DNA of 64,000 bases from the NCBI GenBank assembly GCA_039096225.1, contig JBBPEB010000009.1:1612001-1676000 (forward strand), read 5' to 3'. Every line of letters starts with the position of its first letter. Position 1 is the first letter of the stretch. Position numbers and translations under genes: made by a program. Below are positions 20,208 through 27,544 of the stretch, piece after piece. The notes under the pieces were generated by a model that saw nothing but the letters and a program-made list of their open reading frames with translations, had not been told where the DNA came from and searched no databases. This DNA comes from Blastocystis sp. Blastoise (Eukaryota > Protista > Bigyra: Opalinata).

Positions 20208-21449
20208 ATGTCTCATCGTAAGTTTGAAAGTAAGTTGATATTTATGATTTATAAGGATAGATTCTTAAAGCTAGAATAGAAAAGACTTATTTTTCCCAAT
20301 TTTATAAAGCCCCGTCACGGTAATCTTGGTTTCGCTCCTCGTAAGCGATGTGCTCACCACCGTGGTCACGTTAGAAGTTTCCCTAAGGATAACATCGAAG
20401 CTCAACCTCATCTTACTGCCTTTATGGGTTACAAGGCTGGTATGACCCACATTCTCCGTACTGTTGATCGTGCTGGTTGTAAGAGTCACAAGCAAGAAGT
20501 TGTTGAAGCCGTCACTGTCGTCGAATGTCCTCCTATGGTCGTTGTCGGTATTGTTGGTTACATTGAAACTCCTCGTGGTCTCCGTACTCTTTCTACTGTT
20601 TGGGCTGAACATCTTTCCAATGAAGTCAAGCGTAGATTCTATAAGAATTGGTGTGCTTCTAAGCAGAAGGCTTTCACTAAGTATGCTAAGGCTTTAGCTA
20701 CTGAAGAAGGTAAGCAAAGTATGGCTGCTAAGCTTGATAGAATGATTCATTATTGTTCTGTCATTCGTGTTATTGCTCATACTCAACTTAGTAAGCTTTC
20801 TCTTCGTCAAAAGAAGGCTCATATTATGGAAATCCAAGTTAATGGTGGTTCTATTGAAGCTAAGGTTAACTATGCTAAGGATCTTCTTGAAAAGGAAGTT
20901 AAGGTTTCTGAAATCTTTGAACAAGATGAAATGATCGATGTTATTGCCGTTACTAAGGGTCATGGTACTACTGGTGTCACTAAGAGATTTGGTACTAAGA
21001 GACTTCCTCGTAAGACTCATAGAGGTCTTCGTAAGGTCGCTTGTATTGGACCTTGGCATCCTAGCCGTGTTAACAGATCTGTTGCTCGTACTGGTCAATA
21101 TGGTTATTTCCATAGAACTGAAATTAACAAGAAGATTTATCGTATTGCTAATGGTTCTGATAAGACTAGTGCTTCCACTGAATCTGATTTAACCGAAAAG
21201 GCTATTACTCCCATGGGTGGTTTCCCTCATTATGGTGTTGTCAAGAACGATTTCGTCATGATCAAGGGTTGTTGTCCTGGTACTAAGAAGCGAGTCATTA
21301 CTCTTCGTAAATCTCTTATTCCTCATACTAAGAGAGCTCACCTTGAAAAGATCACTCTTTCTTTCATCGATACCTCCTCCAAATTCGGTCACGGTCGTTT
21401 CCAAACCTCCGTCGAAAAGGCTGCCTTCTATGGTGTCAAGAAGAACTAA
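20208..21449 (+). CDS. RPL3: 60S ribosomal protein uL3; 2 exons (non-canonical intron 20230-20307)
   Basis: [21 protein letters not shown], then [28 protein letters not shown] and [14 protein letters not shown]. Confidence 0.99.
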
Positions 21450-25500: not shown

Positions 25501-25826
25501 TTACTGATGAATTTGAGCGACGGCCTTTTTGGCGGCATCATCAAGATCATCGGCGGGAATAACCTTTAATCCACTATCCTTAATAATCTTCTTACCAATA
25601 GCAACATTAGTACCTTCTAATCTGACAACAAGAGGGATAGAAAGATTGGTTTCCTTAACAGCATCAACAATACCTTGAGCGACAACATCACAACGGACAA
25701 TACCACCGAAAATATTAACTAAAATAGCCTTGACGTGTTTATCAGCACGAAGAATATTAATAGCAGAAATAATTTATGTATATAGGTTATATATAAAGTG
25801 TATATAGAAAAGATGATTCATATATA

Positions 25827-25861
<35 letters not shown>

Positions 25862-27544
25862 TGATAATATATATATTTGATTCTTGTTAGCAGCACCACC
25901 GACATCAAGGAAGTTAGCGGGATTACCTCCATTAAGTTTAATGATATCCATGGTAGCCATAGCAAGACCAGCACCGTTGACCATACAACCGATATTACCA
26001 TCTAAACCAACGTAGTTCACACCAGCTTCAGAAGCAGCGACATCACGAGCATCTTCTTGAGACTATATATATATATAAGATAACTATGTAATCATTTAAC
26101 TAGATAATATATAAATATAGAAATTTCATTTTAATAATATAAAACATAATAAAACATTATTATAATAATAATACTAATAATATACTTTATCTCTTAAAGC
26201 GAAGATATCTTGTTGTCTGAATTTAGCATCTCCATCGAAGTTCAATTTAGCATCAACACAACATATATGTTCTTCGTGATTAGGATTCTCAATAACAGCA
26301 AGAGGGTTAATTTCAACCTATATATATATTCATAAAATAAAATAAATAAATAAATATAATAATGATAAATATGAAAATAAAATAATAAATATGATAAATA
26401 AAATAGGAAACATAAACATAAATAAACATAATAATAATATAATAATATAATAATGATAAATAAAATAAACATAATAATACATACCATAGTAGAATCAGCA
26501 CCAACAAATAAATTATATAATTTCTCCATATTTAATGCAGTTTCATCTAAGAGTTTTCCTTCAACGCCAAGGTTCTTAGCGAAGTTCTTTAATTGAACTT
26601 TATCGATACCAGTCTTCACATCAATAGGTAACTTGAAAATAGTCTCAGGTTTAGTCTTAGAAACTTCTTCAATATCAACACCACCATTAGGACTATATAT
26701 ATATATATATATATTGTTATTGTTAATAATTAATTTAATTTTAAAAAAACTTAAAATGAATAATAATAATAATAAGAATAATAAGAAGAATATATAAATA
26801 TATATATACGAAGCAATCATAACGGGTCCACCAATAGCACGATCTAATAAGATGGCGAAATAGAATTCCTTCTTAATAGGAAGAGCACCACAAACTAAGA
26901 CTTTTTCACATTGAATACCCTTAGCACCAGTTTGCTTAGTAAATAATTTATGACCAAGCATTTGTTCAGATAACTGAGCAACTTCTTTAGGGCTATATAT
27001 ATACATATATATAGAATAGTTATAAACAATTAACAATAAAATAAACAATAAAAAAACACAATAAAATAAACAATAAAAAAACACAATAAAATAAACAATA
27101 AAATAAACAATAAAATAAACAATAAAATAAACAATAAAATAAACAACAGTAAAATAATTTAATTTGAAAAATAAATTCTCAATAAAAAAAAATAAAAATA
27201 TATAAAAAAAATATAAAAATAATAACTTAGGTATTAGCAAGTTTGACACCACCTTGAAGACCAGAGTCAAAATGACCCTTACCACGGCCACCAGCTAAGA
27301 CTTGAGCTTTAACAACAAATTTAGCCTTAGGGAATTGCTTCCAAATACCAGTAGCTATTTCTTCAGCTCTAGTAGAAGAGAAGGCAACATCACCAGTTTG
27401 AGCAGTAGCACCATACTTGGCAATCAGTTCCTTAGATTGATATTCATGGAGATTTAAGAATCTTAAAGAGCCAACAGTCTTAGGAGCAATACGATTGATG
27501 GAATTAAGAGCTACAGATTTGCTAAGGAAACGACTAGCAAACAT
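25501..27544 (-). CDS. Succinyl-CoA ligase beta subunit, mitochondrial; 6 exons (two non-canonical introns)
   Basis: Presequence followed by [62 protein letters not shown] and VRLEGTN. Confidence 0.97.

Follow-up and report, generated by a model that had tools for sequence, protein, structure and literature searches.

Here, we asked whether Blastocystis sp. Blastoise truly splices an intron that begins with AT and ends with AA, or whether the genome assembly misstates the ends of an ordinary intron. The question is raised by a 103-nt segment, intron 5 of a gene for the beta subunit of succinyl-CoA ligase (SCS-beta) that we call copy W, which lies in a 64,000-nt stretch of DNA (the window; G000:C3:1612001-1676000, 17-37% GC) of a 33.3-Mb assembly in 34 contigs. 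The AT...AA ends are truly present in this assembly. As an intron the segment is ordinary; its AT-AA ends are most likely not real, and it is doubtful that they represent a new splice class.

Copy W is an intact minus-strand gene of 431 codons, the parts of which are listed in the table. Its exons were searched singly, the joined coding sequence being used only for a frame check and for the codon comparison with a paralog, and they yielded ATP-grasp_2 and Ligase_CoA domains colinear with solved beta subunits, which identifies the host gene. Once the five introns had been taken out, a frame of 1296 nt remained, whose only stop is the terminal one. On the structure PDB 6mgg_B, exon 5 residues 1-61 correspond to positions 237-297 and exon 6 residues 1-86 to positions 299-384; the two exons thus abut without a gap, and the Pfam Ligase_CoA positions likewise run on across intron 5, within one position. 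An earlier note on this DNA had claimed that conserved spacing requires the removal of these 103 nt, and the abutting exons, the intact frame and a paralog that is uninterrupted at this point bear the claim out. Separately, a stop-free minus-strand frame of 349 codons (window 26242-27291) runs from the interior of intron 1 via exon 2, intron 2, exon 3 and intron 3 to exon 4; a prokaryote-style gene caller would take it for one gene.

Table. Parts of SCS-beta copy W, its paralog P and the RPL3 intron; positions refer to the window unless a locus is given.
Feature	Position	Strand	Description
W exon 1	27231..27544	minus	ATG and presequence-like N-terminus
W intron 1	26993..27230	minus	CT-AG (CTAAGT); odd C is the first base of exon 2
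W exon 2	26810..26992	minus	
W intron 2	26693..26809	minus	GT-AG; common to paralog
W exon 3	26485..26692	minus	ATP-grasp_2 positions 127-194
W intron 3	26318..26484	minus	GT-AG; common to paralog
W exon 4	26186..26317	minus	
W intron 4	26063..26185	minus	GT-AG, 123 nt, phase 0; not in paralog
W exon 5	25877..26062	minus	62 codons, SQEDARD...AANKNQ; CoA-ligase domain begins
W intron 5	25774..25876	minus	103 nt, phase 0, AT...AA; not in paralog
W exon 6	25501..25773	minus	90 codons and TAA stop, ends ...AQIHQ
Paralog P	L006 (G000:C2:155500-161500) 4224-2315	minus	public model P0002, contig 2
RPL3 intron	20230..20307	plus	GT-AA; odd A is the last base of exon 1

The genome holds two SCS-beta loci, W and the paralog P, and no third copy. 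P aligns with W over 431 codons without gaps and at 83% amino-acid identity, and its DNA is uninterrupted across the intron 5 site (...AANKNQIISAIK...). It shares introns 1-3 with W and is without introns 4 and 5; two further introns are unique to it, namely GT-AT at L006 4013-3919 and GT-AG at 2522-2425. As the intact frame and the intron-less paralog indicate, intron 5 would be removed exactly from the mRNA. Every in-frame alternative to it, canonical or AT-AC, deletes or adds residues, and the canonical ones lose conserved residues. The nearest sequences outside this genome, P0003 and P0004 (loci L004 and L005), are ~80% identical and come from another Blastocystis lineage; these relatives are transcripts without introns or else end before the intron 5 site. 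An exact search for the W exon-1 open reading frame gave no match, and a word search with a 77-aa open reading frame running from exon 5 into intron 5 returned distant SCS fragments only.

On its coding strand, intron 5 reads ATATATAT...TACATAA, with 39 A, 9 C, 1 G and 54 T. GT, AG and GC are absent from all 103 nt, in agreement with the earlier remark that the single G leaves no canonical splice inside the segment, and as assembled the intron has neither the GT (or GC) start nor the AG end of U2-type introns. It has the extended U2-type consensus, with A at +3, a TATAT run, T at -3, an AT-rich body and the usual length, and it departs from the local GTATAT...TAG consensus only at +1 (window 25876) and -1 (window 25774). 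From +2 on and up to -2, it resembles the neighbouring introns (GTATATAT...TATAG). Because AAAT is directly repeated at the two junctions, AT-AA, AT-AT and three further registers are equivalent; the AT-AT register that had been proposed as an equivalent thus stands.

Both terminal As of intron 5 recur on the far side of the intron: the A at +1 matches the base with which exon 6 opens, and the A at -1 that with which exon 5 closes. We examined this relation in a sample of 26 introns from nine genes of this genome, 11 of these introns being odd-ended. All 17 non-canonical bases at +1, +2, -1 and -2 equalled the far-exon base, i.e. the base of the mature mRNA (permutation P < 1e-6), with the register of three introns picked as the best-fitting among those that give identical mRNA; an earlier test on 8 positions, made before register choice, had matched the far exon at 7 (P = 1e-5). 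Odd bases unrelated to the far exon, as ordinary point mutations would be, numbered 0/17. The third-base consensus (A at +3 and T at -3, as in GTA...TAG) is kept at all 14 changed ends, so the far-exon copy never exceeds 2 nt; the third base equals that of the far exon once, by chance. Wherever +/-2 is changed, +/-1 is also changed or is already the far-exon base.

When the odd bases were restored, W intron 5 became GTATAT...TAG and W intron 1 became GTAAGT, which is what P has where W has CTAAGT. The odd T of the GT-AT intron, the first in P, is the last base of P exon 1. In both copies of RPS5, the exons before introns 1 and 3 end in TG and AA, and the introns themselves read GT-TG and GT-AA, respectively; RPS5 intron 5, in the register ...GGT/GC...GT/GCT..., has far-exon bases at +2, -2 and -1 and is restored to GTATGT...TAG. 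FKBP and RPS3a were examined after the far-exon hypothesis had been formed. FKBP intron 1 (GG...CT) lies between an exon ending in CT and an exon starting with GG, and its restored form is GTAAGT...TAG. RPS3a has three introns, all of them odd (GT-TG, GG-AG and CG-AG), each odd base being the far-exon base, and restoring introns 2 and 3 gave GTATGT both times.

For the RPL3 intron, 20307 (...TATAA) is the required end, because use of the AG two bases downstream shifts the frame into a stop; an alternative AA...AG register (window 20230-20309, plus strand) gives E-S-P in place of E-K-P. RPS3a intron 1 (L028 1076-1171) has a 9-nt direct repeat, GTTGGTAAG, on its two sides and ten registers with the same mRNA; the repeat is partly due to coding GGT AAG that mimics the 5' splice consensus. 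The two RPS5 copies, L015 (C1) and L016 (C21), have virtually identical exons and flanks and very different intron repeat content, and their odd intron ends are identical. Low-complexity introns in this genome change at a rate well beyond what point substitution could produce.

Odd ends were unevenly distributed among the genes. They occupied 17 of 46 susceptible positions in RPL3, RPS5, RPS3a, FKBP and both SCS-beta copies, compared with 0 of 12 in IMP3 and an organellar-type L4 (Fisher P = 0.012), the high and weak expression classes being assumed from gene identity. The introns of L4 (L032 1683-2319, four introns) and IMP3 (L017 1812-2190, two introns) are canonical GTATA...TATAG only. A search for the RPS9 family gave IMP3 instead.

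Neither random sequencing error nor random mutation with a tolerant spliceosome can give the far-exon rule. The template of the odd bases is the mature junction, and since all 17 odd positions follow the rule, the two odd ends of intron 5 share one systematic cause, technical or biological. The earlier note had reasoned that an artefact would take two independent errors. This reasoning fails, because the reads of one spliced junction would place both odd bases. We consider it probable that the odd ends of intron 5 are an artefact of base correction with spliced RNA reads. W intron 5 would then be an ordinary major-type (U2) spliceosomal intron in a probably highly expressed gene, and in the organism itself it would most likely begin GTATAT and end ...CATAG. 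Where a spliced RNA read reaches only 1-2 nt past the exon-exon junction, it would be too short there for spliced alignment and would be placed, with mismatches, on the intron end; such reads could outvote the true base during base correction of highly expressed genes, and the number of unspliced reads protecting each end could explain why the changes are patchy. Splice-aware aligners require a minimum overhang, e.g. 3 nt at known junctions (STAR default), and unspliced aligners favour one end mismatch over clipping.

The artefact is favoured by the 17/17 rule, the 2-nt limit, the restored consensus and the bias towards high expression (in assumed classes). It is also favoured because GG...CT (FKBP) and CG...AG (RPS3a) are, to our knowledge, accepted by no known spliceosome, and because freely tolerated ends predict common AT-biased point mutations, of which none were seen among the odd bases. 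The R9 nanopore reads from which the strain was assembled, and the heavy polishing that they needed, speak for it as well (PMC12129017; the assembly fits strain Rus-B of that paper). Other observations count against it. About a third of the susceptible positions are altered, even inside one gene, and in W intron 1 the 5' end is changed and the 3' end is not. Polypolish and POLCA are conservative where DNA reads support the reference base. The Methods specify 'Illumina DNA' for Polypolish and just 'short-read' for POLCA (PMC12129017). This wording counts against the artefact, so the technical cause, RNA reads in a polishing step, is one that we infer and that is undocumented. Two further sources of the odd bases were rejected: random nanopore error cannot yield the far-exon rule, and reads of an intron-less paralog fail on numbers and because RPL3, RPS5 and RPS3a are without an intron-less copy.

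The alternative that survives best takes the assembly to be right. The AT...AA ends would be real, a major-type spliceosome would tolerate non-G termini, and the bases would have been templated in vivo, e.g. in short-tract repair or conversion with spliced mRNA/cDNA or the intron-less paralog as donor; tortoise-lineage Blastocystis would thereby splice AT-AA, CT-AG, GT-AT, GG-CT and CG-AG introns with ends copied from the far exon. We regard this as possible, if on the unlikely side. A complete SCS-beta needs an odd intron removed in both copies (W introns 1 and 5; the GT-AT intron 1 of P), with no third copy present, and both RPS5 copies and the sole RPS3a locus found likewise need odd introns removed. 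W remains intact and mostly under purifying selection, as judged from a rough lineage count, and the Methods describe polishing with DNA reads. Introns with A as the first and last base are workable in minor splicing, where AT-AA is the commonest odd type, and G...U ends are used by yeast without Prp18.

However, real odd ends would need two oddities at once, namely templated mutation of exactly 2 nt and a spliceosome accepting GG...CT and CG...AG. The 2-nt limit has no obvious cause, tolerance should also pass point mutations unrelated to the far exon (0/17), and the worst splice sites would sit in the most highly expressed essential genes. There is no sign of altered machinery, because the U1 5' end is canonical (AUACUUACCU) and a Prp18 gene is present in the genome. 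Loss of Prp18 as the basis of relaxed 3' site choice was rejected on the same ground. If this alternative were true, splice sites would be set by something beyond the GT/AG dinucleotides, and the odd bases would have been left behind where highly transcribed genes were repaired on an mRNA template.

The divergence between W and P also bears on in vivo templating. Synonymous differences between the two copies amount to 4-8% in codons 121-180 and ~265-376 and to 17-39% elsewhere, and each copy is ~50% from the outgroup transcript (L005) throughout. The tract at ~265-376 spans the intron 4 and intron 5 sites, which are occupied in W only, and this mosaic, with low divergence over the intron 5 site and both copies normal relative to the outgroup, suggests gene conversion, in keeping with real odd ends. 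As proof that intron 5 is spliced, gene conversion was rejected: it fits a spliced-copy route, yet the other low-divergence tract includes intron 2, diverged but retained in both copies, so the argument is not decisive, and it is silent on the terminal bases at the time of conversion.

It is very unlikely that W is a dying duplicate, in which the segment is retained or cut at distant sites and the contig 2 paralog does the work. A paralog does exist, W has about twice its lineage-specific amino-acid changes (31 vs 16), and two of the five W introns are odd-ended. However, W has no frameshift or stop over 1296 nt and is gap-free relative to P, P itself has an odd-ended intron, and single-locus and essential genes show odd ends too. 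Relative to the outgroup, the W lineage has 31 nonsynonymous and 20 synonymous changes in a rough count that undercounts synonymous ones, and by this count W would still be mostly under purifying selection.

Fainter still is the chance that P0001, the deposited model of W (291 aa), is correct. It starts inside exon 2, drops exon 1 and uses a distant GT...AG pair that makes the protein 25 residues shorter (DVG/VNIFGG). Its standing as the deposited model speaks for it; against it, the paralog, the related Blastocystis transcript P0004 and every solved structure have the 25 residues that it deletes, exon 1 is missing, and gene predictors admit canonical sites only. The earlier note had named use of distant GT-AG sites as an outcome that would overturn the AT-AA intron, and such a pairing comes at the price of these 25 conserved residues. 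P0002 in turn mis-splices the GT-AT intron of P, with the loss of 11 conserved residues (FPQCKFVVKAQ).

To an equally slight degree, intron 5 might belong to the minor (U12-type) introns, among which AT-AA is a known subtype and, of the non-canonical types, the commonest (PMC10639083, PMC1557818). Blastocystis ST1 has hundreds of minor introns, and this genome has genes for the minor spliceosome, with a U6atac at 63.8 bits (above its cut-off) and a likely, full-length U12 at 46.8 bits (short of the family cut-off, 53). A TATATAAC stretch also ends 12 nt short of the 3' end of intron 5. However, for a branch site 10-20 nt from the 3' end this stretch is the best match, and it agrees with TCCTTAAC at 5/8 positions, although the U12 candidate retains the canonical branch-pairing box. 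The 5' end, compared with ATATCCTT or (A/G)TATCCTT, is without the conserved C at +5 and +6, which confirms the earlier observation that the U12 ATATCC signature is missing. U12 motifs were not enriched in the window, and a U12 class would leave the far-exon rule and the CT-AG, GG-CT and CG-AG ends unexplained. On its motifs, intron 5 is unlikely to belong to the U12 class. The U6atac candidate (L008 1501-1617, minus strand) has UGAGCCGAGAGAAGG where the family consensus is UGAAAGGAGAGAAGG, with three bases differing in its box for pairing to the minor 5' splice site.

Least credible is that intron 5 was recently inserted, as an introner or MITE whose target duplication is AAAT, or that it is a nonconventional intron like those of Euglena, with ends that pair. 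Despite AAAT on both sides and a paralog without the intron, the sole match of intron 5 in the 33-Mb genome is itself, an end-pairing fold is absent (MFE -5.5 kcal/mol, less stable than shuffles, z = +2.1), and but for two bases it has the ordinary intron consensus.

Taken together, the far-exon rule and the 2-nt limit provide a single testable explanation for the odd-ended introns of this genome. If they reflect an artefact, the public assembly needs re-polishing with DNA reads only, and many public gene models have been shortened for a technical reason, as P0001 (exon 1 and 25 residues) and P0002 (11 residues) illustrate. If the odd bases are real, a spliceosome that ignores the most conserved eukaryotic expression signals would have to be combined with templated mutation, which would be a major finding.

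Several known systems can be set beside these introns. Fritillaria and Oikopleura have genomes rich in non-canonical introns, and Euglena has nonconventional introns, all of which are transposon-derived or pair at their ends; the likeness lies in many non-GT-AG introns within intact genes, whereas the introns here are one- or two-base variants of canonical ones, with odd bases that copy the far exon. Misalignment of spliced reads predicts far-exon bases at exactly +1, +2, -1 and -2, which fits the introns here, as well as alteration of +/-1 at least as often as +/-2, one cause for both ends and restriction to abundant transcripts; it differs in that the published Methods name no such reads for base correction. 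U12-type AT-AA introns (PMC10639083, PMC1557818) have the same terminal dinucleotides, and this genome has minor snRNA genes, but intron 5 is without the ATATCC 5' motif and the TCCTTAAC branch motif. In yeast lacking Prp18, non-AG 3' ends, in particular ...AU, are used by the major spliceosome (PMC10711555); unlike the situation here, A- or C-final sites are disfavoured there, the 5' changes would be left unexplained, and Prp18 is present in this genome. The closest likeness in sequence is to the ordinary U2-type GT-AG introns of this genome, which run GTATAT, GTATGT or GTAAGT ... TATAG at ~10% GC. Intron 5 is like these in length, composition, phase 0, the TATATAT from +2 to +8, the T at -3 and an ATAAC branch-like motif 12-13 nt from its 3' end, and it is unlike them in its first and last base only, both of which are A in the assembly.
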